DNA of 64,000 nt from Sphaerodactylus townsendi (GCF_021028975.2 NC_059430.1:29884001-29948000); one strand, 5' to 3'; shown: positions 1,778 to 50,199, numbered from the stretch's first letter. Numbers and translations: made by a program. The notes: generated by a model from the letters alone, not told the origin.

Positions 1778-4626
1778 CTACTCATCATCAGAGGGGATTC
1801 CCAGTTCTTCATCTGTCCACTTCGAAGCATCTGGATAAGGGAAGTGGCCCTGTAGGAGGAGGGAAAATGAACAATGTTATTAGCCAGAGAACCAACTGAA
1901 AATGCGTTTTAATATTTCACCAGCAATTAATTCAACTTCGGCAAGATAAAAAAAATGCGGTCCACAACTGTAAAACGCTAGTGATTGGCCATCAGGACCA
2001 CTGAGACTTGTCCCAGTGTGCTGATGACCCCCCCCCCCCCCACACACACACACACCTGGCTCAGCCAGGGTCCTGGGGGAAGCTTGGAAAGAGGTGGCTG
2101 CTCAGCAGGCAGACGGCCTCTCCTGTCTGGGAGGTGGGACCAGGGAAGCTCGAAACAGTGCCTTTTTCAGGGCTGTTTTCCCATCACAGTCTGCCCCAGC
2201 AATGACCCAGAACAACTTTAAGCTGATCTAAGAGCTTGCATGTCCCCAACATTTCCATTTTCCTACTAGAGCCCCGTGGCACAGAGGTGTAAACTGCAGA
2301 ACTGCAGTCAAAAACTCTGTCCACGACCTAGGTTCAATAGAAATCAGTTTCAGGTAAGGTGGCTCAAAATTGACCCAGCATTCCATCCAGCCAAGTTTAG
2401 TAAAAAGAGTATCCGCCTTGCTGAGGGTCAAGTGTAACAACTGGGAATGGCAAACAATGCTGTAAAACGCTTAGTAAATGATGTGATGCACCACCAGTAA
2501 TGGTGTGGTGCTTGCACAGGAAACTACCTTTACCTTTTGAACAATGCTTTCACCCACAGCCCAAGCCCTATTCTGTCAAAAGCTGTTTGTCCTCAAAATG
2601 AATGGAAATGCTGTTTGAAAATCATCTAAAATACCACCCCACCCTTGAGCATTCAAAACATAGTTTGTGGGATTCATACCTTTAGAAGGAGCTGGGGTGG
2701 TGGAAAGTGCCACCAACTCACTACCAATGTATGGCAACCTTGTAGAGTTCTCATCTTTTCAATGTAAGAAGAGCTGCCTCAAATACTTGGGTCAGAGTGA
2801 GATATACCATTCTAAATTCCCAAGCCATGTCTAGAAGCTGCCTAGATCTGGTTTTACACAGCTAGGTTAAAAACCAAAGATGTTGATGAATTAGTTTTCT
2901 CACAGCATAACAAAGAGAAAGTTATTTGTTCTCATCACCTTGGTCACACTTTTTAGGATACATTTGTGCTCCTCATGTTAAAATACACAGAGTCTTGCCA
3001 GAGTCAAGACATCTTGCCTCCAAGGATGTGAGTGGCATTCATAAATGCCATGTTACAGTGTGTCAGGGTGGATAAACTTTACAGGATTATTAACAGACTT
3101 AAATCTGGGGGTCCAGTACTTATTCCCAACTCAGCCATGAAGTTTCCTCTGAACGATCATGAAGCACTCCGTCACTTCCAGCAAAGTGCACTTCACAGAG
3201 TTGTTGGGGAATAAAATGGAGGAAGGGAGACCACCTTGTGATTCTTGGAAGAGAAGGGTGGGATAAAAATGTGACAACAGGCCCAGAACACTGAAGCCAT
3301 TATGAAAATGAGCATTTCCTATGAACTCCCCGGCCTGCTTATTAGACATGATTGTTAAGGCCTGACACCTGACACTCAGCATTTTTCCTCATCCTCTAAT
3401 ACTGTTGCTTTATTATCTTCCCCAGACCACTGAACTCACCAGCACAATATCAGGGTCATGCCAAAAGTTCCACAGGATCCAGAACCACATGAAACCACTG
3501 ATCAGTTCAGCCTTTATTATCTGGGACCGTGAAATCACTGGGAATTGACGGTAAAGAAATGGGGCATGCGCCTCTGTGCTTGCACTACAAGACAAAAATT
3601 ACAATGGAGAAGTCACTCAACAAACCACAAGGGCAATATACACACTTCAAACTTATGTGGGAGTACTTTCATTTTTTAAAAGAGCCATTTTGTATCCTTT
3701 GTCAGGTAAAAAAGGCTTGAATAAATCTCTTTCCCTTCTACCTGCAGCTACACAGAAAATCCTCCAGAAGGTCACAGGATGTCTGGGAAGACAGTAGGTT
3801 TCTGTGGGCAGGACTGTCTCATTCAAGGGAAGCAAGAGCTCAAGCAAGGGGCAGGGGAGAACAATTTCCACCCCTTTGTCCTGTGCCACATTCAACTCTG
3901 TTCCTAAGATCTCTGGGAACACTGTCCAGAGGGGGTGGGCAGGGGGAAGGGGAAAGAGATCCACTTATGGTCCTTGTATTCAACCCAGGGCCTCCAACTA
4001 TCAAACTTGAGATCTTAGTGCTCCTTACCTCTTTTACAAGTACAAAAATAAGATTGGATTTAGGGAGGAGCTGTGGCTCAGTACAAGAGTCTTCATCCAC
4101 TCTGCATGAAGACGGTCCCAGGTTAAATTCCCACTATGCCCATAAAAGGACCAGTCAGTAGGTAAGGTTAAAGAACTGGAAGGTTGCTGCCTGTCTGAGC
4201 AGATAACTGATGGGCCAGTGGCGTCATTCAATACCAGTCAGTTTCGTGTGTGCCAAGAGCATGCCAGAAACTCATTTCCTCAACATTTATAACATCTGCA
4301 TGTTGAAGAAATCAGGTCCCCCCATCCACACAATTTCGCCATAGAACTGAAGCACCTTGCTACATTCTTCAAGAGACCGTGTGTGTGTGAGAGAGAGAGA
4401 GAGAGGGGGGGGGGGACCCCACATTTTGAGTCTGACTATCTAACCCTCACACCGCACTGCCTCGCGGGGGAGAGAAACCCACTCCAAGCCTCCCCGTTTC
4501 AGCCACCCTCAGGATCCAGGATCTCTTCTCCCTGCCTCACCTCCGGGCCCCCGAAGCCACTCCTGTCGCACCTCGAGGGCGAAAGAGGTGCGCTACCAAC
4601 CGCAGCCGGCACAAAGGCCCGACCAT
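1778..4626 (-). CDS. NDUFB2: NADH:ubiquinone oxidoreductase subunit B2 (complex I AGGG subunit), 100 aa; coding exons 4626-4541, 3584-3440, 1849-1778
   Basis: Spliced translation [100 protein letters not shown]. It has the NDUFB2 signatures YRQFP, MWFWILW.FWHD and [16 protein letters not shown], an Arg-rich presequence, and GT-AG introns with matching phases (86+145+72=303 nt). Confidence 0.97.
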
Positions 4627-4629
4627 GGC

Positions 4630-5212
4630 AGCAGTAGCAGCTCCCAGAGCCGTCCTTCACCCTCTAGAGTCACTTCCGCCCTCCTACGTCAATTTATGGC
4701 ACCGCCCAATAACCGGTTCTCTTATTGGCTGTTACAAACTCCGGCGCCTACCAATACTAGTCACGGGGAGAACCAAGAGGGGCCAAATGTAATTTTCTCG
4801 CTGGAGGAGATTCGTCACTTCGTTTGCATTGTGAGAATAAAAGAAAGAACACCAGCCTTCCCTCCATTATACCCCTTCGGCTGTCCAAATGTATCTATTC
4901 CCCGACATTTAGGAGTAAAATAGAACCGCCCTGGGACATACTAAAAAAAAATCTGAGGGGGAGACGCGCGAATCCCTGGATATTGTTTGAGTTTTTCTTC
5001 TACATAGTACTGAGATTGGTTCTACCTAGCAGTCTAAATGCAATAATCAGAGGGAGGTTTCTTGTTTCTTAGGAATTCGTGAAAAAAAACAGGCGGTCTT
5101 TCTCGTAGCCTCCCCCCCGACAGGTGTTGAAGATGGTTCTGTCCTCGTTGCCTGGTTGCTAGGCGACGTTCCAAGCCTGCAGTAACTCATCCCAAAAAGG
5201 GAGGGGGATCAG
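4630..5212. promoter_or_regulatory. CpG-rich bidirectional promoter shared by NDUFB2 (-) and the VWA/DUF4537 gene (+)
   Basis: CpG-dense. ETS/GABP site CACTTCCG 4671-4678, TACGTCA 4685-4691, CCAAT boxes at 4706, 4724 (ATTGG) and 4751, RFX X-box GTTGCTAGGCGAC 5155-5167, and a strong donor CAG|gtgagt at 5212/5213 closing a non-coding + strand first exon. Confidence 0.75.
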
Positions 5213-6037
5213 GTGAGTTGGAGGAGGACAAGACGGGGAAGGCGGGGGCAGGTTGCCAACTGATCATTAGAAAAGGGATGCAACCTGTAAGCCTTTAATG
5301 TTCAATCCATATGCAGGAATATGCCATTGAAGGGTTTCAGGAGGGCAATATTGAGACACATAGTATCTCATTTTTGGCAGGGGCAGCTCAGAAGTTGGCC
5401 ACCTGGGTGAATAAGCAATGCAGGAACCCGCACTTGGTAATGGTTGCTGATACGCAATATGCAACTGTGTAAAGCTCTTTTCAGCCCTGCAAATGTGAAA
5501 AGCAGTGCAGTGGTTTTAAATATACTTTCTTGGGGTTTCCCATTGATGTTCATGGAGGAGAGTTGCCGGCCTTCCTGTGCTTTATGAGGAACCTATGATT
5601 TTGGTTGCACGGTGTGAATTGCAGGGTGAGTGTCGCAGATGCCTCTGAACCTGACTTTCGTTTCCAAGAACGCACAATCTTGTTCCCTGTTTCTTCCTTC
5701 ACTTGGCTGTTGAAAGGGTCTGGAGCCCTAGGTTTGTCTGCTGCTTGATATTTCTTTCCTTGTTTATGTGCACGTGCCATATATTATTTCCATAGCACTT
5801 CTAAGCTTACAACATTATTTACTGCTTTTAAAAATAGTAAAATTAGAAGTACTGTATTAACTTCATTGAGAAAGTGCAAGAAATGGGGAAATCTATGATA
5901 ACATGAGTTGGGGGTGGGCCGGGGATGAAAAATCTGAAAATATTATTGGGGTGGGGGGACTCTAATGAGCCAAAGTGGAAACCTTGCCTAAATATGCATT
6001 GGTGGTCAATTTTTCCCCTTTTTACTTCAATACAGAA

Positions 6038-9000
6038 ATGGCCAGGCTTTCCCCTCAAAGTACAACTTTCCCCTTAACGGCTAATATCCATGAACAGAAG
6101 GTTATTTTTGTGATCTGTGCCTCGGAAAGAATGCCCTCCAAAACTACTATCCTAAAAGAACTTCTCATAAAAACTCTCTTCTCGCTGATCAGCAGGCCAA
6201 GAGATTGCATGTTCAGCATCATCTGCTGTGCCACTGCCAACAAGGTAACATAAAACTTAAATGTGCTGTGTAGCATTTAGGGTGCAGGATGAAGGTCTTG
6301 GAGCTCCAGGCTCAAATCTTCACTCAGCAGTGGAATTTACAGGATTAACACAGGCCAGCCGCACACTTTCAACCTAACCACCTACCTTACAAAGTTCTTG
6401 TGAGGATAAAATAAGGAAGGAAGAATGATATATGCCAATCTGAACTCCTTGAACTCAAGGCAAGATAAAAATATACTAGACAGATTGCAATATAATATTA
6501 TAAAAGAACTCTTTTTTTCTCCCAGGGTATTTCCACACAATCAATCTGGCCAGTGACACAGTCTCTGAATGAAAGCAATAATCATCTGCAAGCCAGATTA
6601 TTGGGGTACTCTCCAAAATGTGTAATTGTGATTAGAGTTTATAGGACATAATCCTTAAACTGGCTATTGTGGGTTTGCTGGGCTATATTGGCTGTAGTCT
6701 GGTAATTTTTGCTCCTAATGTTTTGCCTGCATCTATGACTGTCCATAGATGTGGGTGACATGTTAGATGCAAAAGCTACCAGACCACGGCTGTGCAGCTT
6801 GGAAAACCCACAACAGCCAGGTGATGGTGGCTATGGAAGCCTTTGACAATGTGATCCTTAAACTTCCTCCGCAGGTTCTAAAATGGCAAAACACTTTGGG
6901 GAAATGTTCCCTTGCTAGTGTTGCTGAAGCAGCTGCCTGGATTCGAGCCCTGGAGTGTGTGAGCGGGGCCAGTGTTGTGAGTGGTGTGGAAGCAGCTTTG
7001 GAAGACCCCAGTTGTCAGGCTGTGTATCTCTTCACCGGTGGGCTGCCCGAGTGTACTGCAGAGGAAATCTGTCTCCTCCTGAAAAAGACAGGGCGAGTCC
7101 GCCCCCTGCACACAGTATACTTGCTAGGAAATGGAGGGGAAAATAAAAACCGCTTTCAAGAAATATTGGAGAAAATAGCCAAGGAGTCTGGAGGTTCTTT
7201 TCAAAGGATCAGCTTCAGCCCTGAAGAATGTGAAGATCAGGTAACTGAAAAATAAATATTGTAGAACTGAATTTGGTTCACACTTGCAAGCACATCACTT
7301 AGTTTACCCCTCAGGCAAATTTGTGAAAAATGTTGTGTCTGGAGGAGCTTTCAGTGACATGTTGATTCTATCTATGGCAGTAGACTTACAAAGATTTGTT
7401 CATATCTGCAGACCATTGCACGATATGTTATCCCTCAAGCATGCTGTTAGTGTCAGTGTGGTATAAGGGTTAGAGAGCCTGACTAGGATCTAGGACACCC
7501 AAGTTCTAATCCCTACTCTGCCATGGAAGCGTGATGGGTGACCTTGGGTCAGTTTTGCTCTCTTTCTCTCTCTGCTTCATCCTCACAACACCCCTGTGCA
7601 GTTGGTTAGATTGAGAGAGAGATGCCAAACTGAACTCCTTAGAGCAAGGGCAGAATAGAAACGCAATAGATGGAAAGATGGATTTGCATGCGTGAACCTG
7701 CCTTAGTCCAGATGTTGGGAAAGTCTGAAAGGTCATGAGGTCCCAGATTAGATTCTGTAGTCTTCTTTCTAGATTAATCCTGGAGGCATGACGAGCATTC
7801 ACCATCCTGATTGCATTGGCTGGTCCTCTCTGCCGGCAAGTCATCACACAGCCAAGTGGTAAGTTTAAAGCTGTGGATCTTTTAGACATATCAATCATCT
7901 TGCTAATCATGGAGTGGGAACTATGAAAAACCTCTGGGAAAGGGCAGGATAAAAATATAATAAATAAATAAACCTGTCGCTTTTGTGTTTCTTCTCTGTC
8001 TTTGATTCATGTTAATCTGGAGTTGTCTGGAGCAACTAGTCTTGTTTCCCTAGGATGTGTTACTACTTTGTGTCTGCAGTTCTCCTTTGGGTATATGGAG
8101 CCTGGATTCCCCCCACACCCCGCTTTTCAACTCTACAAAGGAGGACTTCATAGCCTGTCACCCAATGATTGACAGCTTGCAAAGAGGGGTTCGAGTGCTA
8201 GCCAGAAAAAAGACAGATGGGTATTTCTATCTAGGTCACATTGCCCAACATGTGAAGGTAGGTTTATTTGAGGAAAGGGGTGAGAACATCTTAGTATTTT
8301 TGACATTTTTTTTGGTATATGTCTCTGAGGGTTCTACACATTCATTGTATCTCCAGTGAGAATCCCTTGGGGAGCTCTAAATGAATGTCACATCGTCCAC
8401 CTCCTGGGTGCCCTCCTTAAGAACACAAGAAGAGCCCCGCTGGATTAGTGATCCAATTAATTCAGCACCCTATTTCCCCCAGCAGCCTGTCAGATACTGC
8501 AAGGAAGCCCACAAGCAAGGCACAGAGGCCAAAGACTTTAATGATTGGGACAAACAGCATTACTTTGCTATGGAAGGTGAACATTTTTGTACAGGTTGTG
8601 GTATCTTGGCTGATGAAGATCTGGCCCTTGGCAAATAATGGTGGAGGCAGGAGAACTTTTGTTACAGGTTCAGAGACTGTTTTGGATGACCTATTTCCAT
8701 AGCCCTCTCTTGACTACTTTTGAACAATTGTGTGAGGAGGGAAACTGATCTGTTTTCCCTGATCTGGTGGTAGGTGCCACCAAGCAACTCCTTTTGTTAC
8801 ATTCAAGCAGATAAGGTTTCTCAAATATCCACATAACTGGAAAGAAAGCTGATATAGCTGGTTTACTTCAGGAGACTTCCCAGATTACTACTGAGTTCAC
8901 CAGTCTGTTGTGCCAGCCATAATGTAGTTTCAAGCACTGTCAAAACATTTGGGTAGCCACTGCATTAAACAATGCAGAGCAACTAACAAAAATGTGAAAT

Positions 9001-12000
9001 GGTACATTTTGCATGTATTTTAGAAAACAGAACACTAATTCAGGTGTAAAACATTTTGGCCTGGTCCAGTGGGAGTCTTTCTGTGAACACGAAGGTTACT
9101 GGTAGATGTCAGGGGATTGAGATGCATTCCTACCTCATTGTGACCACTGAACACTACAAATGAATGCTGCTGAAAGATATATGTTACCACTGCCATCTGG
9201 GACATTCTGTCTTTGATATTTACTTTATGGTTTAGCTCGCTTTGTAGATAACTAGGCTTACCCCTAACTCCCTGGTTCCATGAGCATATCATAGCTCTAC
9301 TTTGAATTGGCTTGTCAACTTAACTTAAGGTGAGATGAGATATTCAAGTTCACCCCAATATTCATAACACAGTAATTAATAGCTTATAGTTGTCTCTGTC
9401 TGACAAGTTCACATGTAGATGGCAATTACACTGTTGATTCATCACAGGCCTGATCTGATCTGCACACAACAGCATTAAGGTGTTGGGTGAACAGCACAGT
9501 CCCATCACAGTGATACCCTCAAAGCCCATTCAGTTCAACTGACTTTGATGGGTGTGACTCTGCTTAGGATCACCCGGCAACACTTGTTCCATCTGAGTGT
9601 TTTGTTGTATCAATTTTAAGGCAAACAACATTTTTATTGGCAAGGTCTGTGACTTCATCCCACAGGGCTCCAAAGGACATGTTCTAATCATGTTCAAGAG
9701 AGCCAGGAAATCTCCTAAAGGTAAGGCTGAGTTTCGCATGCAAGAAACGCCACTTTACGATGTCATCCATCACGAGGACGGCAGGTGGCAGCCAGTGGCT
9801 CCAGGAGACAGAGTCCTGGCTCCGTGGGAGAAGAAAGGCAACCGATACGGCCCAGGCACTGTCCTTCAGATCACAGAGACTGGATTGGCTCATTCAGGTA
9901 TGCTGCTGCTGTTACTTTACAGCTATGCCCCCATCCACTGTCTAAAGGCATAAGGATACAAAACTTGCCTTTTCCATGCACCTTGGGGTACAACTGATCT
10001 AGATCTGCCCCACTTGCAACTGAAGTGCTCCATTGACTGGTGAAAGATATGCACAAGGTAACACGCTCAGAGAGGAACCTTCTTAGTTCAGACTGTCCTT
10101 AAGGTTCCATGGAACATCAGGGGCTCCTGTCATTCTAGATAAGGGGTCAGAGCAAGAGGAAGTGAATCATGCCTACGTCTAAAGGTGATTTCCCCCCCCC
10201 CCCGCCCCCGCAATTTCTCTTTGCAGCTTTTAAAAACAGTGAAGTGCTGGTCAGTTTCTGGAATGGTAAGACTAAGAAAGTGCCTATGGATATCGTTGTA
10301 AGGATCCCTCTTCCTGTGAGCGAACGCATCATCCTTGAACTCCAGATGCCGTTAGCAGCCAGGCAGATGCTGGTGGAGCAGAACCCACATTATCCGTACA
10401 CTGTGCCACCTGGTTATCGAGCGTCAGGACCTTGCAGGCAGAGCCGTTTGGATTGCATTTGTTGGAGGGACGTTTCAAAGGGCCCACATGTCAGCACTAC
10501 CTGCTGTTCTGCCCAGGTGCCCCCTTGGTGTTTCTGCTCCCCAGCGTGGGAACATGTTTGGCCCACAGTCACTTCGATGCAGCCAGAAGATACCTTGATT
10601 CCAGGAACAAATATGACCAAAGAAGAACTGAATAGGAAGATAGAAGAGCAGCTGTCAAGGGGGAAACTGCCAGTGTGGAAAACTAGTGAGAAGAGCGGGA
10701 AGCTGAAAGAAAAAAAGAATGTGGTGGACGTAACAGCCCATAAAGAGTCGGAGAGCGAAGTTACAACACAGGTACAATACTATGCAGACTAGACATATTT
10801 TCAGACTTCTTACAACTGCCACAGGGTATCAGGGCCTCTGGTCAATATGTTTACAGAGGTTATACTTCCATAAACGTACCAAAACCTTGTATATACTCAT
10901 CTGGGCCATACAAGATCTTTCCCACACAACTCAACAGCGCAGGACCAATTACAGTGTACCCATCCCTGTTCCATCTCCATGTTCTCTTGGGGCTCTTTTC
11001 TGATTTTTGCAGACCCGGCAGAAGGAGAGTGCTTCAGAAGATCTGCCAGAGGAAGATCTGAGAGAAGGCACCAGTACCACTGTTGACATAGCTGTCAACA
11101 CAGACAAGTGCGTTCCTTGGCAGGAACAGAAAGGTAGGCAGAAGTTGTGAAGAATATTTTCAGGGCTCCTGGTGACTTTCAGACAGGTATTGTTTGAAAT
11201 TACATACCAGCAGCTGATAAGCAAAAACACAGGCCTGGAAATACCAGAGTAATCACAGAATTGTGAGCCATTGAGGGTCCCGTCCTCTGTGTTTGCATAT
11301 TCCATCTTCGGAGCTCACACTTATTGTGTATCCGCCCTGATGAGCTGTGATGTTGAATCTGAAACGTTTTTAGAGGTAATGTTGGAGTGTCTGTTGGAAC
11401 GGTTTTTAACTGAAATTTAACTGTGTTTTTATTGACCTGTACACCACCCAGAGCCTTAGGGGATGGGGCAGTAAATCAAAACAAACAAACAAACAAATAA
11501 GAATGCACAGATAGTCTAGACTTCTGTGTTCTTGTCCATGAGAGGCCAGATCCACTTCGTCAATCTGTATGGTCCATTTCTTCCCCATCCTTCCTCCAAG
11601 AAACTCAGAGCAGCGTATGTGGTTTTCTCTTCCTCGTTCTGTCGTCACAATAATCCTGACTGGCCCAAGGAGACAGCTTCATAGCAAATGAAGGGTTTGA
11701 ACTTGGGCTCTCTCAGATCCTACTCCGATACTCTCGCGGCTACACCACTCTGGCACCATAGTGGTGTCACTGAGGACCATGCCATGCATCATGCCATGAT
11801 ACCAAATGCTCCCTTTTCTGAAACGTGATTGGACTGTATGTGAAATATTTCTTCCTCTAGGGAAAAGGGTCCTGAGTTATTTCTTATTATGCCCATACCG
11901 TAGTAATTGATAAAAATCCCACCAGAAGGAGGATAAACACAGCAATGTATGGAAAACGCTCCTTTCTTCGTGTTTAACAGAGTGCAAGGCAGTTCTAGAA

Positions 12001-15000
12001 AGGTCTCTTTAGAGATATTCATGGTTCCTGGGGACTGAAGCCTCTTTTTAAAGGTGCACAACCTTATCAGTGCGACAGGTAGCAAGGGGAAAGTTGCTTT
12101 GGCCTCTGCTATCAGTCAGAGGATCAAGGGCCACTGCCTGATTTCACTGAGCCCCTGCAGGAACACCATCGAGGAAGAATCAGCCTGACTCCCACTGAGT
12201 AAAAACACCTTGCAGCTTCTGTGCTGTGAAGATTCTGGTGTTGCTGTCAGGTTCTGTCCAGCTGCTATCACCTAATCCCTCTGATGAGCCTGTTGCTGCC
12301 CTGTTGGGAGTTTGGGACCTGAGGGCATGGTGGCAGTAATACACTTCCCAGGTGCTTGGCTGCTATCAGGCTCACTTTGTTCCCAGTTTCTATTCTCAGC
12401 CTCTCTACCTCCCCCACACACCCCTGCATTCCAGGACTGGGAGTTCTCAGCAGTCAGTAATAATGAAGCTCTTCAGTGTAAATCTACTAACTAACATAAA
12501 CATCCAGAGATGTACGGCCTATAGGGACATGGGGTCACCCATGTCCTCGGGTGCAAGCCTTTTGGTCACAAAACAAAATGGCATGCACCTCAGCCGCATG
12601 CCAACAAGCCCTGCCCTCTGCCAGCCATCTCCTGCCGTCCCCAGGGCCTGGGCACAACAGGAGCCTGTCTGCAGGGAGTGGGGCTCGGTGGCGGGCAGTC
12701 ACCTGGGCCACCCGCTGCCCCAAAGCCTGCCCCCCCCAACCTTCATGGCTGGCTCTTGCTCTTCCCAGGGCTTAGGTATGGCAGGAGCTGGCCTGCGGAG
12801 GTGGGGGTGGGTGGGCGCCCAGAGAAGGTGTTGTCCCCGGGCGCCATTTGCCCCCAGTACGCCTCTGTAAACATCCTAACATTTCTCTTTCCCAGGGGGA
12901 AGGTTGTACTGGCTATACCTCATCCTAGCTTTCCCAAGTTCCTCAGATCTGGCTATGGAGCACTATGGCTATTTGCCTTGCATAGCACTTCAACAAAGAC
13001 TGCTGTTGTCTCGTTAATGTCTGGAGTATTGTTAATGTCTGTTGACAAGCAGCCTTGCAATCGTGTTGATTGCCGCTTCAAATGCAGAGTCAAGTCCATG
13101 CACGGGAGTTTTCTGCACGTTTTCTTCTGTCTCTTTTCCAACTTTTCCACAAATGCTCTGCAGTGGCTCTGCTCTAACTGTTCTGGTAAACTGTGGGTAG
13201 TTAAGTGGCCGTAGATCAATTGGCCATGCCAGCAGGGGCTAATGGGAATTGTAGTCCATGAACATCTAAAGCGCCAGAGTTGGACACCCCTGCCATAGCT
13301 CATTATCTCGCTATAACAGTTACTAGTTTAAAAAAACACTTATCAAGAAGCCTTCTGGTGCCACAGCAGAAAGAAAATGCAAGGAAAATGGTGCCTGCAG
13401 GGGCTGACAGTGGAAAATGGCATTGATGTGGGTGGGACGAATGTGACCGTTCCTTCCAGAAGGTGTGTGCTCTTCCAAAACTGCTCAGAGTAAAACAGTT
13501 TTGGGAAAGTATATTGAGAACAGGAGAAAACTGGAAAGTGGGCAATTGCAGCTCATGGAAACTCTGATCACCACCACCACCCCGAAACAGAAAGTTTGGA
13601 AGCCAAGGGGGCAAAAAACTTTTAGGAGGAAGAAACACTTGTTAGCAACTCCTCTCTTTGCCAAACAGAGCTCCTTCCTCCACCTTTAGTGGCTACTCCC
13701 CTTCCTTGTGTTGCTGTTCTTTTTTTTTTCTTTTATTCCTGAGTCTTATTTTTATTTACATGTATCCCCTGCTATCATCACCATATGCTGCATTTCAATA
13801 GATAGGAGTCACTTTGTGGGACAATTTTATCTCACTTTTGGGGGGGGAAATACCAAAGAATAAAGAAAATTTGCCATTTGGTTTTGCTTTTTACATAACG
13901 TATCATCCTGATAGTTTATTTATTTTGTATAACAGTATATCCTCAACCCAACGTGACTGAAACGTCAGCCCAGCCTTTCTACCAGAGCCCTCGTGTTGCA
14001 CCCCTTCCCCAAGTCCACGCTATAATTGGTTGGGCTGACCAGTCACTAAAGGAAGACAGTTCAGCTATTGAATCAGTTTTGCCCATGAGGAGGAGCCACA
14101 GTGCACCAGCCGTACAGGTAAGGACATCTTGCCTGTAATAATTTGGCTGTGGTTATCCATGCTGTGATCACATCTGGGTTAGATTGCTGCTATGCACTCT
14201 GCATGGGCTGTCCTTGAGGACTCTTCAGAAACTTCCGATGGCATAAAATGCAGCAGCAAGGTTGCTAACTGGTGCAAATTTATGAGAACTGGAATTGAAG
14301 TCTATAAAATTATGCATGAGGTAGAAAATGTTGACAGAGAGAAATTTTTCTCTCTTTCTCACAATACTAGAACCAGGGAGCATTCATTGAAAATGCTGGG
14401 GGGAAGAATTAAGACTAATAAAAGGAAACACTTCTTCACGCAATGTGTGATTGGTGTTTGGAATATGCTGCCACAGGAGGTGGTGATGGCCACTAACCTG
14501 GATAGCTTTAAAAAGGGCTTGGACAGATTTATGGAGGAGAAGTCGATCTATGGCTACCAATCTGGATCCTCCTTGATCTCAGATTGCAAATGCCTTAGCA
14601 AACCAGGTGCTCAGGAGCAGCAGCAGGCCATTGCTTTCACATCCTGCACGTGAGCTCCCAAAGGCACCTGGTGGGCTACTGCGAGTAGCAGAGTGCTGGA
14701 CTAGATGGACTCTGGTCTGATCCAGCAGGCTAGTTCTTATGTTCTTATGAACATCTCTTGCTAGTATTATAAAAGCTATATGGGTTGCTAGTTCACTTCT
14801 GGGCACAATTTCAGACACTGTTTTTCTTTTAAACCCCTAAAAAGTCTGGGACTGAGTATTTGAAGGACTGCCTCCTTCCCCGGAGCCCCCGCTTTGTTTG
14901 TCCCTGCCCTCTGAAGCAGTGTGGGTAGCCACCAAAGACGGGACTTTTGGGTTTTCGTACCTTGACTATGAAATGTCTTTGCCAAAAGTTTTCTCTTTGT

Positions 15001-17867
15001 GCATGTCTACAAGGTTACAGTGCCAAGTATTTTTTTTAACCAGGCCTTTTATCGCTTGCCATTTATGTCTTTTAATTGTCCTGTGTCTGATGGTCTAAAG
15101 TGAATGGTGGAATCTGCTTTGGAAAACAAATGAACAGAGAATCCCCACCTCCCAATGCTTGACTAGTCTCCTTATTGAAAACGAGGGCCAATTTTTTTGG
15201 TGAACACAGTATTCCTTTGATGTAAAAGCCAGTAGGTGGTGAATGATCTTTGCAGAAAGCAGTCCCTTTGCCCCCTCAGAGATTAACAGTGAAAACAGCA
15301 TCTCCAGATAGTGCAAGAGAAGCAGTGAGGATAGAGTTCAGACGTCAGAAGCGGGAGCAGAGACAGCTCAAGGAGGAGCAGGAGCGGCAGGAGGAACGCA
15401 TCCGAAAAGATCTGCTGCGTGATAAGAAAAGGTAATGGAGCCCGTGGTGCTAGTCAAGGACCCATGAGCTCTAGGTTCAAATTCCGACTCAGACATGATT
15501 TTGGGTCATGCATGCTCATCTCCACCTATCTCACAGGGCTGTTCCCAGCTGTCTTAATCTGTGGGCTGGTCCATGTGGACAAAGACACTCTGGTGAGGTT
15601 GCCAGGTCCCCTCTGGCAAGGGATGTGGGGCAGGTAGGGTTGCTAGATCCAAGTCCTGGAGATTTGGGAGCAAAGCTTGGAAAGAACAGGGACCTCAGTG
15701 GGGTATAACACCAACAGAGGCCACCCTCCATTTTCTTCAGGGGAAGTGATCTGGAGATAAGCTGTAATTCAGGTGATCCCCGGGTCTCACCTGGATGCTG
15801 GCATCCCTACACTTTGGCCACTCAGGGTTTTAAGGGCCTAGCACTTTGAACTGGGTCTAGAAGCAAACTGGAAGCCAGTGCAGTCAATATAAAATTAAAA
15901 TACAAAAGCTTTTCCTACATGCTTACAATCTAATCATCCCAGATTGCTGTTTATAACTTCTACCCACAAATTCCAACAAAATTGCTCCATTAACTGCTTT
16001 CTTGGATCGTGTATGGCCAGATCCATGGAGAGTTTGGTGTACCTAAGAGTTAGAATTGCAGATTTCCAACATCACAGAAGCAAATCTTTATATTCCATTT
16101 CCAGGTTCCACACTGCAATCCACCCAAGGTTAAAGGCAGACAGAAGGCAGTGTGTTACTATTTTGTTCAGCTCACTGAAAATGCCCAGAGTAGTTCTTGA
16201 CTGTTTTCCATTGTCTATAACAGACTGAATGTGTCTAAAGGGCTTTTCTTTGTACTGCATTTCCTCTGGTGCTTTTTGGAAACAGGCACAGATCACTCCA
16301 GCAAAGCTTGCAAGGCTCACAAAAGCAGCAGGAGAACAGCGAAAGAGCCTGGCAGCACTTCAGGCAGCTGCAGGTCGCCACAGCAGAGAGAAGGAGGCAA
16401 GAGTCCTGCTTGCGGGAGGAGGAGGAGAACAAAGAGAGTCAAAGGCTGGAGTTCCTAAAGGCGCAGCGCAAGCACAGAGACCAGCAACTGGCAGAACACA
16501 ATCAAAGAGTTGCTGACCAGGAGAGCAAAAGGCTGGTGAGGCCTATTCTCATTGACTTTCCCTCTTCCAGTTTCTCAGAAAGGTCTTTTCATATGAAAAA
16601 CATGCTCAAAGCATAAGTGGGACAGTTTTTCCAGCCTAGCAAGAAAATCCACGTTCAAACTTGCTTTTTTGGCACAGTATGTTCTGAGTTTTTTGGCACA
16701 GTATGTTCTGAGTTTGTCTGTGGAGGGAGAAGTGGTTTCCAGAGTTTAAGGTTAAGAACTACAGTGCATTTGAGCTCTTCGATACCAAAAAGGCTTGTAG
16801 GTGAAATTTCAAAACGTGTAATCTGTAGAGCAGAACTTTTGAACAAAATTCTTCATCGATTGCCCAGATCCCTCAGGTATAAGTATTAAATTCGGCATCC
16901 TGTAAATATTATGTAAACTTTGCATAATTTACCTAATTTGCATAGTTTTTTTGTGCTGCTGCTGGTTGTGGGGATACCCAGCAAAGTATGCCAAGAATGT
17001 AGAATCTGACCTGTTAACCACTGGAATTTCCACTGGTGAGCTTCTTTCCCCAGCCACTGTGCATACACAATTCAAACTTTATGGACTAGCAACTTCCTTT
17101 TAAAAAAAAAACCACCCTGCAGTTATTGGGTAATGCTCAAAACTCCCAATATTGATTTGTGCTAATGCTGGCTTTATATTTTAGAAGAAGAAGAAGAGTT
17201 TGGATTTATATCCCCCCCCCTTCTCTTCTGCAGGAGACTCAAAGAGGCTTACAATCTCCTTGCCCTTCCCCCCTCACAACAAACACCCTGTGAGGTAGGT
17301 GGGGCTGAGAGAGCTCTGAGAAGCTGTGACTAGCCCAAGGTCACCCAGCTGGCGTGTGTGGGAGTGCACAGGCTAATCTGAATTCCCCAGATAAGCCTCC
17401 ACAGCTCAGGCGGCAGAGCTGGGAATCAAACCCAGTTCCTCCAGATTAGATACACGAGCTCTTAACCTCCTACGCCACTGCAAACATTGTGAAGGATCAC
17501 AAAATATTCATCCAGTCGCCCTTGCAATTAAAGACCGTTTGGTGTTTCAGATCCCCATTTACTGCATTTCTGCTGTGTATCATCAGAACCAAGAGCTACA
17601 CACATGCAATATTTTAAATGTCTTTAGCATCCTTTTTCATAGGAGCTGCTCAAGAACAGAATGCAATCCGTGAAAAAGAATTTGGAAGCCGCAGGGCAGG
17701 AAGAGGGCGCCAAGGAGAAGGAGACGGTGACTGCCAAATTGCGAGACCTCCAAAAGCGAGAGTTGATGTCCCAGCGGGTAGAAAAGAAGAGACAGGAAAC
17801 TCAGGATCTCCAACGGTATGTCAGGGAGCAGAGCCTCCTGATGCTGCGGGCCTCTCTGCTATCATAA
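6038..17867 (+). CDS. Uncharacterised VWA + DUF4537 (C11orf16/VWA3B-like) + coiled-coil protein, 855 aa; coding exons 6038-6244, 6875-7240, 7773-7858, 8080-8257, 9666-9897, 10227-10771, 11013-11133, 13936-14117, 15256-15431, 16286-16535, 17643-17867
   Basis: All 10 introns are GT-AG with compatible phases (0,0,2,0,1,0,1,0,2,0), giving a 2568-nt open frame ending in TAA. The N-terminus is VWA-like (KVIFVICAS...VLKWQNTL...AAAWIRAL...AVYLFTGGLP...IAKESGGSF). The middle has C11orf16/DUF4537 motifs (VLARKKTDGYFYLG, PGDRVLAPW...YGPGTV, VSFWNGKTKKVP, AVNTD). The C-terminus is an E/R/Q/K-rich helix. Confidence 0.88.
12505..12867. mobile_element. GC-rich hAT-type MITE
   Basis: TIR CAGAGATGTAC / GTACGCCTCTG; perfect 8-bp TSD TAAACATC. 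Confidence 0.75.
14290..14748 (+). mobile_element. CR1 LINE 3' fragment
   Basis: IEVYKIMH...TRTR.HSLK...RKHFFTQ.VI.VWN.LP.EVV.A...FKKGLDRFM is the CR1 ORF2 C-terminus; (TTCTTATG)n tail. Confidence 0.9.
17184..17481 (-). mobile_element. Squam3-like SINE
   Basis: Reverse-complement copy of 34712-35013 with a (GAA)n start. Confidence 0.85.
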
Positions 17868-23800: not shown

Positions 23801-26800
23801 ATTACAGATCTGCTCCTGGGCGTTCTTTCTCAGAGTTCCTAAAGCAGTGATGGTGAACCTTTTCGAGACCAAGTGCCCAAATTGCAACCCAAAACCCACT
23901 TCTTTATCACAAAGTGCCAACCCGGCAATTGAACCTGAATACTGAGGTTTTAGTTTAGAAAAAATGGTTGGCTCTGAGGCGTGCGTTACTCGGGAGTAAG
24001 CTTGGTGGTAGTCATTGGCTTTGCTTTGAAGCAACCATACAACTCTTCGAATGGGTGAATCATGACCGTAGGAGGGTTTACTCAGAAGCAAGCCCCATTG
24101 CCAGCAACTGAACTTACTCCCAGGTAAAGGATCGCACTTTATTTCTTTGCATGAAAATCAGTGGGGTTTAACAGGGTTAACTACACTGCCTCCCCAAAAC
24201 TAGGTCTTAGATTTAATGCTAATAATTGAGCCCAGCGGCCCAGGCCAGCCTAGATGTGTGTGTGTGGGGGGGCAGTTTCCCCCCCACATGACAAACTTTG
24301 TTTGCGCGTGCCCACAGAGAGGGCTCTGAGTGCCACCTCTGGCACCCGTGCCATAGGTTCGCCATCACTGTCCTAAAGGAACAGAAACCTAGTTCTGAAT
24401 TTGAAAATGGCAACTTTATATCAGAGCCTGGAAAGGAGGAACGGAAAATGGTGGCAGGGTACAGAAGATGTTCCAGTGGGTAATGGAACACCAATGGGAA
24501 GATCTGAAGGAAGTGAGGTAAAGGGTGGTCCCAAAGAGTCCAAGAGAAGTCAACGATCAAAGGCAAGAGTCCTGAACCCATGGCACTTCAGGGGATGAGC
24601 CGGTGGACCCACCATCCAGGATACATGTGACTATAGTACCGTGCCTTTCTCTCTAAGGTGCCAAAATGTAGAAGGCCTCACCTGTCCTAGTACCACAGCT
24701 GTAAACACCGCCCGGAGGTTCTGAAGGTCACCACTTTGCAACTCTGCTATGATTCCTGCATCCAGAAGTACCAATCGGAGGGGGGAACGTGAAGGCTGAA
24801 CTTCCAAAATTAGTGTGTCAAATAGGTCCACCGTGTTAGTCGAGACTTTAAGGTTATCACTGAAGGACTCTGCTCCCTGGACTAGAATATTCCCAGGGTG
24901 CAGGTCAGCATGGACAAAGTTATCAACAAACACCTGAAGGACAGAGAATCACAGCATGACAAACGCAGTCGCACAGCTTCTGAAGTCAAGCGCTCGTGTG
25001 TTAAGTGGAGTGGCCAACACTGAGGAGAACCTCTTTTGTATGAGAGGCCAGACAAAGCATATGAAACTGACTCACAGCATATTTAGTTCAGAGGTCTAAA
25101 TGCACATTATTTGAAAAAAAGGACATTAAGAGATATTCACTTATTTCCAATTAATGCATACTGTCCAGAGACCAGAGGAAATCTGGACCAATCATCTCAG
25201 TGGCTCAGGGCCTGGAATTCTTGTATCCTGCTGGACCCCATCCAAAGATCCTTTGTGTAAAAACCCAATAACTTGACCCTTCCATACAATATGTCTTCTA
25301 TTAACACACTAAAGTTGGCAACGACTTCAAGATCAGCAATGCCAAAATTCTACAATCAAAATACAATACGTAAGTCAAACATACTGCATCATTCATTCCA
25401 GGCATATAACCAGGCTTTCTGGTTGAAGAAAGTGGAATTACATAATGCAGATTTCCAGCCTTCCAGATGATAAGCTAATTGAGCTGACTGCAGAAACAGG
25501 TCAAGACTCTTACCATCTTTAGCAGCATGTCTATGCCCATCTTGGCTAATGTCTTTCGCAGGGCCATTTTGACCTCGGGGCGCAGAAACTGAGATACTGG
25601 TTCAGCTGCCTTTAAAAGAGACCAAATGGAATCAGGAAGGGCCAGTGGCAATCCTTTCTGATACTTCAGGAACATAGAAAAAGCAACGGGTATGCTGTAA
25701 TCAGCATACCTGTGAAGGGCATCACATGGTCTGCACCGGTTTCAGAAAGAGACATTTCCACTTCTCCATTACTGCCTTTCCTCTGTTGAGAAATCTCTCA
25801 CATCAAAAGCTCACACGTGTTTTTTCAGAAGTAATTCACACTGGATTCCAAGAGGTTTACTAATAAGTAAGTAGGCCTAGCAACATCCATTACCTTCCGC
25901 ACAGCTGGACAAAACATTGTCACTGACATTAACGAAGTTGTGGTTTTACATTCAGGAATTGTAAAAAATGCCCAGCCAGACCATAATACCTTGGATATAA
26001 GCTTGTGGATTTGAAATGAAATAATTGAGAGTGGTCACCCTAGCTCCCCGGCCTAAATGGGAACCCACAAAATCCAATTTAATATAAGTAACTTTATTTA
26101 CAATGGATTATTTGTTTAGGTTTCTGCTGTTAGCAAATTGACTTTTGATAGGGCCCCTGGTATGTGCCCTTATTCCACACATTACAATTTCTGGTTATGG
26201 GCTTGACATAAAGTTTCCTGAAAACCAGCCTGGCTTACCCATCCGGCACAGAATTACTTTGCAGCTAAAAAGAGCAATCTGGTGTGTAACCCGTTTCCCC
26301 AAGACAGCAAAGGAAAGACATACTGGTTGCTGCCTTTGCTAGATGTCCAAAGGCTGTGTAGGCAACCACCACCATCAAAGTAAGAACACAAAGACCTTCC
26401 TGCCCCCAACTGGATGTTAACATTTGATTCTTTTCAACAAGGCCAAACTGATCTCCATTATCTCCCTCTATGCAACTTCCCTTGTAGGGTGTGTCTGTTT
26501 AGTCAGTATACCTGAAGATAAAGGCTTGTGTTTCCTGGTTGATATAAGTCGCTTTGAGACAGTGTTTGAAAGGTGGACTATAAATGTAACCCTAAACTGT
26601 TCCCTGACTTGAATGGTTCAGGCTAGCCCATGGATCTGCAACCTGCGGCTCTCCAGGTGTTCATGAACTACAATTCCCATCAGCTCCTGTCAGCATGGCC
26701 AACCCTAACCCCTGGGCTAGCCTGATCTTGTCAAATAGATCTCAGAAGGTAAGAAGGATCAGCCCTGGTTAGTGCTTGGATGAGGAACCACCAAGAAATT

Positions 26801-29800: not shown

Positions 29801-32800
29801 CTCTTCCATTTAACCCCCTTCCCCTTTGACTGCTCCATCAGTTTGTTTAGATCAGGGGTCTGCAACCTGCAGTTCTCCAGATGTTCATGGACTACAATTC
29901 CCAATTGGCAATGCTGACAGGGGCTGATGGGATTTGTAGTCCATGAACATCTGGAGAGCCGCAGGTTGCAGACCCCTGGCTTAGATCCAGGATTCAGCCA
30001 TTTAATCTGTGTTGTGTTTTGTGAGCTGTATTTCAGCTCTGCTTTTTATTACTACACAGTTGACTGGAAATGTGTTTAAAGCTCACTGTGGTTCAACACT
30101 TTTTAACTTCTGCTACACCCTTTTCCACCAAAAGATCTAAGTGCAGTCAGTCGTGCTGCAGTGGAAGTGATAGTAGTCTTGAATGTCTATGAGAGTTAAA
30201 GAATTGATTTTACGCGAAGCCTTCGTCAAAACCACCATTCTGTGCACTATTAAACACGGTAGCTTGATTAAAGAGTATTTGTACTGCATCAACGACTATC
30301 AGCAAAACTTGCAGACAATCAAAAGAAAAATAATCCACAGCTCCATACAAAACATCTTCCTACCTGCTGAGTCATGAGTTTCTCAAATTCTTCCACAATC
30401 TCGGTTGGACTGAGCCATTTGAGGCCAGGAAAAAGCTCAATGAATCGGCTAGTGACCTTCATCAGAAACAAATCCATTTCAACCTGATGAACCAATCCAG
30501 GATGTAGCACCTAAGCAAGGAACACATGAAGACAGATCAAGTTTTTGGGCACAGAATATATACTGATATAGCATCCACAAGCCAGTCATTACATGCAATG
30601 TTCCTACATACAGTCAATTGACCATGTATATCTTGCTATTGCTGTGAATGCAGAAAAAAATGCAGGAACAAAAGAGAATCCACACAAGTTTTGCTCGCAC
30701 TTTCCTTAGCTCAGTCCCCATGGCTACCATTTTCACCTCTTCCAGAGGGCTTTTTTACTGATTTTTTTAAAAAGTTAATGACTAATAGCTAGTTAGATAT
30801 AGCATTATAATTATCTATTGCAACAATACACTAGCTCCCAGGTTTCATTTTGTTTTCATTTAGCCCTTTTTGTTGTGGAGTTATATAGAGAGATGTACAG
30901 TCAGTATCTTCCCCTTTGTAACTGCAAAGAAAAAGGCCAGAGACTTACTTTTAAAAAGAAAGCTGGAAACTAGCTGTAACAGATTGTTATAACATTGTAG
31001 TACTATAGCTATTGCCTCCCTCAAAAAAAAATCTGGGGTTTTTTTGGGGGGGCGAGGAGGGGGGAAGACAGATTTTGCAGAGATTGAGTTAAGGAATAGC
31101 CCTTCCTCTCTTTCAGGCACTCTACTATTACTGACAGTCACATTGAAGAAGCAATTCAAAAATGTCTTCAGTTTCCATTTCTATCAATAACTACTCCACA
31201 AAATGGAAGCAAAAAGCACACACACTACTGGAGCAAGTGCCATTATCTGAAGGAACAAAAGCATGCCCCCCCCCCCCCCCCCAAAAAAAAAAGACCTCCA
31301 CATTTTTCGGCCAAATTAGAGCTGTAGAAACACAATTACTTTGGCAGTCTCTTGTCAATTTCCTTCTGCAAAGGTAATCTCCCTGGTCAATTTCACTTGG
31401 CCCTAACTGTGGACACATGGGTAGTTTAGTATATATTGACAAAGCTTAGCCAATGGACCCTGCTTCTTATCTCTGCCTCAATGGCAAAGAGAGATAAAAT
31501 AAATCCTTTTAAAATGGAATATGAGGAGGAGGAGAAAATGGCTGAAGGAGAGGTTGGATGATTACACAGGGACATGGATAAGGGCCAGGTGTTTGATGGG
31601 GCAGGGAATTAAAGACCATTTCAACATGATCACATTCTCAAAGGAAACTGGCTTGGATATGGATTTTAAAAATTGCCATGGAAGTTCTTAAGGAACTAAT
31701 GGAGAAAAAAACATGTGGAAATCAAAGACAAAAATGTAGTAGTGGCAAACTTTTTAAAAACTTGTGCGGAAGAGGCTGTATTCTTACAGTTCATATTCAT
31801 AATAAGGCCGCTTTGAAGTCCTATTACTAATATACAAGACGTAGGAACATATCTCCTAAACAAAAAATGGGTAGGATAATATTTGTATGAGCATCCAACA
31901 GCATTTAAGATCATCTGGGAGAATTCTGCAATTTTTTATGGGGGATGAGGTATTATTTTATTGTAATTTATGGATAATTAAAACTAATTTTAAGTTTTGG
32001 GTTTTTTTAGTTGTATATATTTCAGTGTTTGCTTACTTGACCCTCTTTTTGGCCATTCGATTTGTTTTCAGCATTGAATTTTTTTGCCATTGGTGTATTA
32101 ACTCTGGCAGGGAAGAAGAAGAAGAGTTGGATTTATATCCCCCCTTTCTCTTCTGTAAGGAGACTCAAAGGGGCTTACAAGCTCCTTTCCCAAACACCCT
32201 GTGAGGTAGGTGGGGCTGAGAAAGCTCAGAAGAACTGTGATTAACCTAAGGTCACCCAGCTGGCATGGGTTGGAGTGCACAAGCTAATTTACTTCATTTG
32301 TCCCGTTTTTTCCTCCAATGGGAACTCAAAGCGGCTTACAACATTCACCCCTCCTCCATTTTATCCTCACAACAATCCTGTGAGGTAGGTTGGTCTGAGT
32401 GTATGTGACTGGCCCATGGTTACCCAAAAAGTTGCTATGGCAGAGTAGGGATTCAGACTTGGGCCTTCCATATCCTAGGCCAGCGGTTCTCAACCTTCCT
32501 AATGTCGCTACCCTTTAATACAGTTCCTCATGTTGTGGTGACCCCCAGCCCTAACATTTATCCATTTTACAGATGGAGAACACTGATGCAGAGAGTCTTA
32601 GGCGACCCCTGTGAAAGGGTCGTTCAAACCCCAAAGGGGTCCCGTCCCCCAGGTTGAGAACCACTGTCCTAGACCAACGTTCTAATCACTATACTACACT
32701 GCTTCTTCTAAAAGCATATAAGCATGCCCTGGATTGGAGCCATTACTTACTTTAATGGCTACTGGAACAAGCTGATTCCTTTTGGAAGAGGGCGACAACA

Positions 32801-33710: not shown

Positions 33711-33849
33711 CAAGAGGGGAAGGAAGGGCCGCTGACTTAAATCTCAGTTCTGTTGGCGAATGAGCTCTCCGGAGCTTAAGAGCCGGCAGTTGATATGGAG
33801 TAAAGAAGGCTGCAACGCTGCAATTAAAGGCAATTCCCACCCACGCTCT

Positions 33850-48924: not shown

Positions 48925-50199
48925 TACAAGCATCTATCCCCCTAAACAATTAGGATTATGCCAGAAGTCTACATTTAGAGAAATTAATAATAAAATGGAC
49001 ATCATTGTAGGGTGCTCATGCATTGGGCATGATTTTTAGATCCATCAGAGTTCTTTTTCAGTTTTTTAGAAGTGGGAGTGTGTAAATGGGAATTGATTAG
49101 GGCAAAATGAATGTGGTAGGGAATGAATTACTCCCAAATTAGCCGATTAAAAAAGTGAGCAGAAGTGGATGAACTGATAAAACTTGACGACATTAAAGGC
49201 CCTTCGCCTTTCAAGCTTTGCAGAGTAACAGTGGCAGTCCAGATGTTTTTATCCTTGATGTACCACAGTTGCATTATAAGATGATGCACTTCAGAGCATG
49301 TGTAAACACTTGGTAAATCAGTGATAGTAATCTTTGTTGGAGAGAGGAGAATTTCTCAAATTTGCCTCCTCATATTGTATTTCTAACCAGGTGAGGAAAA
49401 GTCGCTTTAACCATTTGGCTCGAAGTTGCAGATAACAATTTAGCTGGTTCTAAACAAATTTCGGAAAACTGTTACTCGATAGGAGCACTTATTTGTCTTG
49501 TGTTATAGAATTCTTCACGTTTCCTAGCTATAAACGGGTACAAGTCCACTGCTGTTGTGTGAGCTTTACTTTCACGTGACGAGGTTTGGTCTGGATCAAT
49601 TGGCCATGCTGGCAGGGGCTGATGGGATTTGTAGTCCATGAACATCTGGAGAGCCGCAGGTTGCAGACCCCTGGATGGTGTTGCAGGTGGGTTCTTGGGT
49701 GAGGCTCCCGTTCTCTGGCTGGATTAATTATTCTGTATGCTTTTAAAAAAAGTGGCAAAAAAGACAATATGGATTCTGCCATCACTCTTAAATTCCACTT
49801 CATGCTCAGGCTGCAATCCTAAAAACAGTCCCTTAGGAGTCAGTCCAGTGGAATAAAATGGGATTTAGACCTGTTTAGGATTGCTGCCTAAATCGTTTTA
49901 AAATAATTGACATGCGTGGATAAATTGGGTCCATGAAAAAAAGAACCTCTTTGTTTTGTTTGCTTAGATAAGTAGATTGAGTAACTTTGAAAAAGTTTTG
50001 GGGGGAGGAGGTTAGCAAGGCAGAATGGGTTAACTCTCTTCATTAATTCCCCACCCCATGTTGTCCAAAAGAAAGTCCTGTTTACTGCAGTTTCCCCAAG
50101 TCCTCAACTATTCTGGGTTTCCATAGCAATGGGGCCGGTTCCTCAGCCAGCTGCAGATTAGCTCACTGGAAAGGAGTCAGGATGGGTCAGGCTAGGGAA

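Follow-up and report, generated by a model that had tools for sequence, protein, structure and literature searches.

Which gene lies between NDUFB2 and ADCK2 in reptiles, at a place where to our knowledge the human genome has no coding gene between ADCK2 and NDUFB2? We addressed this question in a stretch of 64,000 nucleotides from the gecko Sphaerodactylus townsendi (GCF_021028975.2, NC_059430.1:29884001-29948000), hereafter the window, which contains no N and which carries on its plus strand a gene that RefSeq lists as "uncharacterized LOC125434273". The analysis confirmed that this gecko gene is real and intact. The best explanation of what it is, and one that we consider highly probable, is that LOC125434273 is a functional sister paralogue of C11orf16 at a conserved NDUFB2/ADCK2 locus, that the metal ion-dependent adhesion site (MIDAS) of its von Willebrand factor A (VWA) domain has eroded in tetrapods; its product may act as a non-enzymatic scaffold.

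Open segments between 6.0 and 17.9 kb on the plus strand were chained through AG/GT sites with matching phases, which yielded 11 coding exons. When searched exon by exon, all 11 translations matched P0108 (S. townsendi LOC125434273 isoform X2, 847 amino acids) with 100% identity and in contiguous order. The exons and what they encode are as follows.

6038-6244, plus strand: coding exon 1, residues 1-69, VWA strand beta-1 and the eroded MIDAS loop, 100% identical to P0108
6875-7240, plus strand: coding exon 2, residues 70-191, remainder of the VWA fold
7773-7858, plus strand: coding exon 3, residues 192-220, disordered linker with a 9-base in-frame length difference after 7818
8080-8257, plus strand: coding exon 4, residues 220-279, start of DUF4537 and first Tudor-like barrel (DUF4537 E 5e-4, 53BP1 Tudor E 0.014)
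9666-9897, plus strand: coding exon 5, residues 280-357, DUF4537 core and start of the second barrel (DUF4537 E 8e-8)
10227-10771, plus strand: coding exon 6, residues 357-538, end of DUF4537, two helices and a Cys/Pro-rich disordered part
11013-11133, plus strand: coding exon 7, residues 539-579, VD.AVNTD motif
13936-14117, plus strand: coding exon 8, residues 579-639
15280-15431, plus strand: coding exon 9, residues 640-690, start of a long Glu/Arg/Lys-rich helix
16286-16535, plus strand: coding exon 10, residues 690-773, long helix
17643-17867, plus strand: coding exon 11, end of the helix, with the stop codon

The coding span on the plus strand runs from the ATG at 6038 to the stop codon at 17865-17867 and comprises 847 codons with no internal stops and with AG/GT at all internal borders; the nearest poly(A)-type signal on its 3' side is ATTAAA at 18154. 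An alternative in-frame acceptor at 15256, 24 bases upstream of 15280, adds eight codons (KAVPLPPQ) and lengthens the product from 847 to 855 residues. The longer form is probably RefSeq isoform X1, and the Eublepharis model of the gene has the short form, with the acceptor equivalent to 15280. The original prediction, made from the sequence alone, had described 11 exons of consistent phase with an uninterrupted 855-residue frame, and this is borne out, the 855 residues being the 847 plus the eight codons from acceptor 15256; the borders that it gave to two short exons, 7773-7858 and 11013-11133, are exact. Its start of the gene at 5140 has to be corrected, as that position is non-coding and falls in a 5' untranslated exon, with coding beginning at 6038. 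Because the exon translations are identical to P0108, the gene model is already public in RefSeq, albeit without a name. The description "unnamed" therefore holds, RefSeq giving only a LOC identifier, whereas "unannotated" would not, since RefSeq has models of the gene in well over 100 species. A literature search gave no mention of LOC125434273 or of five orthologous LOC identifiers.

All 11 exons were found in the same order in Eublepharis macularius. Comparison of the two species exon by exon with the Nei-Gojobori method (NG86) gave a ratio of nonsynonymous to synonymous substitution rates (dN/dS) of 0.39 (dN 0.164, dS 0.419, 827 codons), with every exon below 1 (0.24-0.62) and an approximate Fisher test for constraint at p ~1e-18, and the ratio against alligator was 0.27. 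Set beside the value of ~1 that the original prediction had named, together with a lack of spliced reads, as telling against it, these ratios show that LOC125434273 is under moderate purifying selection while evolving fairly fast. With regard to transcription, an uninterrupted open reading frame of 694 residues, with 89% identity to the parrot orthologue, is present on two Logan contigs (2.2-2.6 kb, from two runs). The contigs are spliced mRNAs from a bird copy of the gene.

An exhaustive HMMER search with exon 10229-10771 recovered 84 homologues. A full-length protein search with the snake orthologue, for which 120 of 127 matches are listed, reached sharks at 30-36% identity and returned, among the matches listed, snakes, lizards, turtles, crocodilians, many birds, salamanders, a frog, and sharks and rays; further look-ups added orthologues in Xenopus, Pelobates, lungfish, gar, paddlefish and bichir. 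The names given to these orthologues by their sources are inconsistent and include "uncharacterized", "trichohyalin-like", "C11orf16 homolog", "C11orf16-like" and "inner centromere protein-like". What is consistent is the location. In the window the gene and NDUFB2 are arranged head-to-head at a distance of about 0.5 kb, and the gene and ADCK2 tail-to-tail; Pfam confirms both minus-strand flanks: an NDUFB2 exon at 3416-3598 matches NADH_B2 (E 2.8e-16) and has its start codon at 4626-4624, and ADCK2 exons at 24634-24948 and 32697-33743 match ABC1. The position between NDUFB2 and ADCK2 given in the original prediction is thus upheld. The survey of synteny that it proposed found the same order, NADH_B2 on the minus strand, the gene on the plus strand and ABC1 on the minus strand, in alligator, Xenopus tropicalis, gar and Eublepharis, and in the catshark the gene adjoins ABC1 on the minus strand. 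This arrangement has been kept since before the split of sharks and bony vertebrates. In Eublepharis BRAF lies beyond NDUFB2, and a flycatcher model (P0192) fuses the gene with a RAF-type kinase (Pkinase and C1 domains), which is accidental evidence of synteny and wrong as a protein.

A frog protein named "C11orf16 homolog", used as query, retrieved a second and distinct set of genes in the same species as well as in a marsupial. This set includes S. townsendi P0302, itself named "C11orf16 homolog", in which DUF4537 scores 89 bits. Both genes occur together in S. townsendi (P0108 and P0302), Eublepharis, Sceloporus, Pelobates, Protopterus, Polyodon, Chiloscyllium and Heptranchias. C11orf16, whose UniProt mnemonic is CK016, lies at the ASCL3/AKIP1 locus and not at NDUFB2/ADCK2: in Sceloporus the gene for P0338 is located between a helix-loop-helix (HLH) gene and AKIP1, an ASCL3-C11orf16-AKIP1 arrangement. 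Two bird models (P0322 and P0342) fuse C11orf16 with a basic HLH gene, and these too are accidental evidence of synteny and wrong as proteins. There are two paralogues, at different loci, each of which is conserved.

Trees of 55 proteins, with no vertebrate VWA3B included, were assessed by the Shimodaira-Hasegawa-like approximate likelihood ratio test (SH-aLRT) under LG+C20 in a quick search and by ultrafast bootstrap (UFBoot) under LG+F+G4 in IQ-TREE. The groups of interest received the following support.

Clade of LOC125434273 orthologues: SH-aLRT 99, UFBoot 100
C11orf16 clade: SH-aLRT 100, UFBoot 100
Both clades together: SH-aLRT 99, UFBoot 98
Both clades plus tunicates as sister: SH-aLRT 87, UFBoot 90

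The C11orf16 of the marsupial Sarcophilus falls in the C11orf16 clade and not in that of LOC125434273, while tunicates, amphioxus and ambulacrarians branch outside the joint vertebrate clade, tunicates and amphioxus having one copy each. The two vertebrate genes therefore form separate sister clades and do not group as one-to-one orthologues, an outcome on which the original prediction had made its case depend. Its claim of a third vertebrate DUF4537 gene, distinct from C11orf16, is supported by coexistence within one species, by the different loci and by separate clades with support of 99-100. As both paralogues are present in shark, ray-finned and lobe-finned lineages, the trees support a duplication later than the divergence of tunicates and earlier than that of sharks from bony vertebrates, as expected of an ohnologue, and the suggestion that the gene may be the ohnologue of C11orf16 fits this timing. 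No cyclostome, arthropod or nematode member of the family appeared in the hit lists of the snake, frog or amphioxus searches. On the paralogon argument the two copies would lie in paralogous blocks marked by DENND2A and DENND2B; DENND2A was not recognised in the part of the window beyond ADCK2 (34-64 kb), and the flanks covered at the other loci, 10 kb each, stop short of any DENND2 gene.

The family reaches well beyond vertebrates. An amphioxus query returned 68 matches, which cover cnidarians, molluscs, an annelid, a brachiopod, a nemertean, a rotifer, echinoderms, hemichordates and tunicates and which also include fish C11orf16 (1.9e-105) and the gene studied here (1e-79). The invertebrate VWA_3+DUF4537 proteins, such as amphioxus "C11orf16", Saccoglossus LOC100372388, Nematostella LOC5513500 and mollusc "CK016-like" proteins, share with the gecko protein the order of domains and a long charged C-terminal region, and differ from it in having an intact MIDAS (DTSGSM, GT, TDG), a length of 900-1430 residues and no AVNTD. 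They are pro-orthologues of both vertebrate copies. Fish C11orf16 likewise has the VWA+DUF4537 layout: lungfish, paddlefish and shark proteins have ~830-850 residues, as in LOC125434273. The tetrapod C11orf16 proteins, by contrast, have wholly lost the VWA domain, retain DUF4537 only and measure 370-690 residues, whereas LOC125434273 keeps a VWA fold without the metal site. Together these data show a pan-metazoan and usually single-copy VWA+DUF4537 family, in which LOC125434273 is a vertebrate-specific sister paralogue of C11orf16, and they support VWA+DUF4537 as the ancestral architecture from cnidarians to amphioxus and fish C11orf16. An ancestral architecture had been foreseen in the original prediction, which called it "VWA3B-like"; the combination of domains stands as ancestral, whereas the likeness to VWA3B is a loose one, there being no VWA3B among the 68 amphioxus matches.

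C11orf16 is present in mammals. LOC125434273, which the original prediction suggested may have been lost there, had no counterpart in the mammalian protein sets searched by HMMER and by a named-protein search. The 84 HMMER representatives hold no mammalian copy, being all non-mammalian orthologues, three C11orf16 proteins or invertebrate members, and no mammal stands among the listed matches of the snake-orthologue search, even though that search reached sharks. Among the matches listed in the snake and frog searches there is also no teleost for either paralogue, whereas non-teleost ray-finned fishes (gar, bichir, paddlefish and sturgeon) have the family. NDUFB2-AS1 is an annotated human long non-coding RNA, and the literature on it consists of prognostic signatures only. 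One might speculate that an ohnologue some 450 million years old, head-to-head with NDUFB2, was lost through separate deletions on the mammalian and the teleost stem, that NDUFB2-AS1 is the surviving activity of the divergent promoter, and that the tetrapod losses in the VWA domain mark the loss of a metal-dependent partner once shared by both paralogues. We regard this scenario as distinctly doubtful; if it were true, NDUFB2-AS1 would document a coding gene of which only antisense transcription from the promoter is left.

From its N terminus onward the protein, in its 847- or 855-residue form, comprises a VWA fold, a tandem Tudor-like DUF4537 module and a helix of ~190 residues, and these three parts are joined by disordered linkers. 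An AlphaFold2 model built on 51 family members divides it as follows.

Residues 21-185: alpha/beta domain (Rossmann-like, VWA), predicted local distance difference test score (pLDDT) 83-95
Residues 187-249: disorder
Residues 250-420: two beta-barrels and two helices
Residues 425-650: mostly disorder
Residues 652-845: one long helix

A pLDDT of 83-95 holds across both the VWA and the barrel regions. Pfam DUF4537 (PF15057) scores 70.5 bits on P0108 against a cut-off of 27 (E 1.6e-19, residues 257-383), and single exons of the window score 20.6 and 32.7 bits. The VD.AVNTD motif lies at residue 565 in coding exon 7; it occurs in both vertebrate clades and not in invertebrates, so that the gecko protein and C11orf16 have in common both the tandem barrels and a vertebrate-only motif. 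The assignment of the central motifs to C11orf16/DUF4537, AVNTD included, was thus correct. In Foldseek searches the N-terminal domain matched the VWA domain of ITIH1 (2.4e-8), and the family profile matched that of ITIH4 (2e-11), these being the best solved matches to this domain; the ITIH proteins differ in being secreted and in having a working MIDAS, where the gecko has CASER for DxSxS and TGG for TDG. The barrels matched the tandem Tudor domains of BAHCC1 and 53BP1 (1e-6 to 3e-6), with SHH1 SAWADEE and SETDB1 also matched, and the family profile matched the Tudor domains of PHF19 and PHF1 (1.6e-5). A sequence search of the PDB with the whole snake orthologue returned nothing useful.

We compared the MIDAS in the family alignment at P0108 residues 20-34, 94-104 and 116-127. 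The site (DTSGSM, GT, TDG) is intact in the invertebrate members and in five fish copies of the gene (shark, bichir, gar and paddlefish), and it is lost in 26 of the 26 aligned tetrapod copies, the gecko reading CASER, GAS and TGG. Because the erosion is common to all these tetrapods, it must be ancient and does not point to decay of recent date. With the MIDAS eroded in the tetrapod copies of this gene and the whole VWA domain lost from tetrapod C11orf16, VWA function seems to have been given up in parallel by the two paralogues at about the fish-tetrapod transition.

Upstream of the coding exons we distinguish the following features, the strand being left open for the first.

4627-5139, no strand assigned: shared divergent promoter between the NDUFB2 start codon and exon 1 of LOC125434273
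5140-5213, plus strand: predicted non-coding first exon (5' untranslated region), with donor CAG/GTGAGT after 5213 and an approximate 5' end
5155-5167, plus strand: X-box-like site GTTGCTAGGCGAC, conserved, with 2 mismatches to GTNRCC-N-RGYAAC

The promoter has a CCAAT box and an inverted CCAAT box (ATTGG) at about 4705-4730, both kept in Eublepharis, and the alignment of 4530-5273 with the corresponding Eublepharis DNA has 770 columns and 70% identity, an unusual figure for non-coding sequence when dS is 0.42. The donor after 5213 and the block flanking it are conserved in Eublepharis as well, and an ATG at 5133 reaches a stop after 9 codons. We searched for the X-box consensus GTNRCC N0-3 RGYAAC, of which perfect sites are expected, by hand arithmetic, ~0.02-0.03 times per region. 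Perfect X-boxes were found in the DNA between NDUFB2 and the gene in alligator (GTTGCCAGGCAAC, locus L001, 8771-8783) and in gar (GTCACCTGGCAAC, locus L003, 9532-9544), and none with at most one mismatch in the corresponding region of Xenopus or Eublepharis. In the gecko a perfect GTTGCC half-site lies at 5147-5152.

Several observations weigh against the explanation given at the outset. The Pfam VWA_3 model falls below threshold in the gecko protein (E 0.12), while it passes in snake, monitor, turtle, crane, newt, catshark, amphioxus and acorn worm, with orthologues at 27-32 bits; the VWA domain claimed in the original prediction accordingly holds as a fold, predicted at pLDDT 83-95 and matching solved VWA domains, and is weak on the gecko sequence score. 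In the first barrel, which aligns to PHF19, family members have Arg or Lys where the cage tryptophan should stand, with Y270 and F289 kept. For a ciliary role in particular, gecko positions 4400-5400 contain no X-box with at most one mismatch. The absence from mammals is one from protein collections and not from mammalian genomes. A search for S. townsendi runs returned DNA runs only and no RNA. Lastly, relative to a taxon ~1% diverged, exons 2-8 carry 9 nonsynonymous and 4 synonymous changes and exons diverge about as much as introns, with no constraint visible, although these 13 exonic changes are too few to judge by. The contigs of three DNA runs, namely two samples under the same species label and the one taxon ~1% diverged, all have, relative to the window, 9 extra bases (GTAAGCCCT) after 7818, which are in frame and add Lys-Pro-Cys.

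Could these observations mean that the gene is a decaying relic, a pseudogene in the making or a meaningless Gnomon model? The DNA-only runs, the similar divergence of exons and introns, the 9-base difference inside exon 7773-7858 and the eroded metal site would all fit such a reading, which we nevertheless judge very unlikely: there are 847 codons without stop or frameshift, all splice sites are intact, no exon has a dN/dS as high as 1, the 9 bases preserve the frame and fall in a disordered linker, the MIDAS erosion is old, and the orthologue is spliced and transcribed in a bird. A pseudogene is rejected on the intact frame and the purifying selection. A different question is whether the gene is simply the one-to-one orthologue of mammalian C11orf16, relocated. 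Several bird and lizard models bear the names "C11orf16 homolog" or "C11orf16-like", and DUF4537 and VD.AVNTD are common to both genes, yet both genes exist in the same species, the marsupial C11orf16 sits in the other clade, and NDUFB2/ADCK2 is not the HLH/AKIP1 locus. Relocation has next to no chance of being correct and is refuted by the coexistence of P0108 and P0302 in one genome. Membership in, or orthology to, VWA3B draws on the fact that VWA_3 and DUF4537 are joined in VWA3B clusters, DUF4537 being present in 99% of the members of the Atlas VWA3B cluster, and that the sources of some invertebrate members call them VWA3B or VWA3A. Human VWA3B is in the ~1,300-residue size class and the Atlas representative has 1,561 residues; the amphioxus search, whose length window of about 755-2400 residues spans this ~1,300-1,560-residue size, contained no vertebrate VWA3B among its 68 matches, and the Atlas feature score of the VWA3B cluster is 0.90, against 0.93-0.96 for C11orf16-type clusters. 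VWA3B appears on this basis to be a more distant family, and we rejected it as the orthologue on the amphioxus search and the Atlas scores; the probability left to it is very slight.

The remaining alternative concerns what the protein does and leaves the identity of the gene unchanged: it could be a nuclear reader of methylated lysine or arginine on histones or non-histone proteins, like the Tudor modules of PHF1/PHF19, 53BP1 and BAHCC1. The best structural and profile matches of DUF4537 are indeed to chromatin-reading Tudor modules, with which it shares a two-barrel fold (Foldseek E 1e-6 to 1e-5, SHH1 SAWADEE included), and the second barrel keeps W333, Y340, F367 and W368 in 41-51 of the 51 members; judged by alignment, W333 is found in 42 of 51, an aromatic at Y340 in 51 of 51, F367 in 51 of 51 and an aromatic at W368 in 46 of 51. 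Against this, the fourth aromatic of the second barrel is off the canonical spacing, the first barrel has Arg or Lys in place of its cage tryptophan, no chromatin-associated domains accompany the module, and resemblance of fold alone does not show ligand specificity. The X-boxes in two promoters and the listing of the human paralogue with cilia genes, moreover, point elsewhere. We therefore think a methyl-reading function rather unlikely. For the sister paralogue of C11orf16 that we favor, no catalytic signature was found, and a metal-independent VWA domain, a tandem Tudor-like module and a long charged helix could together form a non-enzymatic scaffold, in which the MIDAS-less VWA and the Tudor-like barrels might be protein-binding modules and the long helix a spacer or a dimerising rod. 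It is conceivable, at somewhat below even chances, that such a scaffold would work in motile-ciliated cells or sperm. Pointers in this direction are the perfect X-boxes of alligator and gar, the conserved gecko site at 5155-5167 with its 2 mismatches, the lack of any arthropod or nematode among the 68 amphioxus-query matches, and a published list of differentially expressed genes (PMC8798121) in which human C11orf16 stands inside a block of genes for motile cilia.

A few features of the window lie outside the gene or in its introns. The intron between 14117 and 15280 contains on the plus strand, at 14183-14650, an open segment of 156 codons that resembles by eye the C-terminal part of a CR1/L2-type long interspersed nuclear element reverse transcriptase and is not part of the gene. 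In the intron after 16535 a 24-base unit is perfectly duplicated in tandem (16665-16715, 2.1 copies). High-copy repeats occupy intronic positions 6600-6999, 7400-7599, 7800-7999 and 9000-9399, where summed contig depth rises to thousands or tens of thousands against ~20-40 elsewhere and many joints are chimeric. Farther along, at about 50000-50900, lies a G+C-rich stretch in which GC skew is strongly positive and both strands have open frames of low complexity; it may represent a CpG-island promoter belonging to the gene that follows ADCK2.

No function is on record for C11orf16 or for DUF4537, and DUF4537 is seldom mentioned in the literature. What is added here is that the family is pan-metazoan and that vertebrates have two copies of it, the second of which has no name, is mislabelled in many annotations and did not turn up in the mammalian and teleost proteins searched. 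This is a modest result of comparative genomics on a known, uncharacterised family and not a new kind of system. It provides a clean definition of orthology, which accounts for the conflicting automatic names, and it points to Xenopus, chicken and gar as model species suited to the study of both paralogues.

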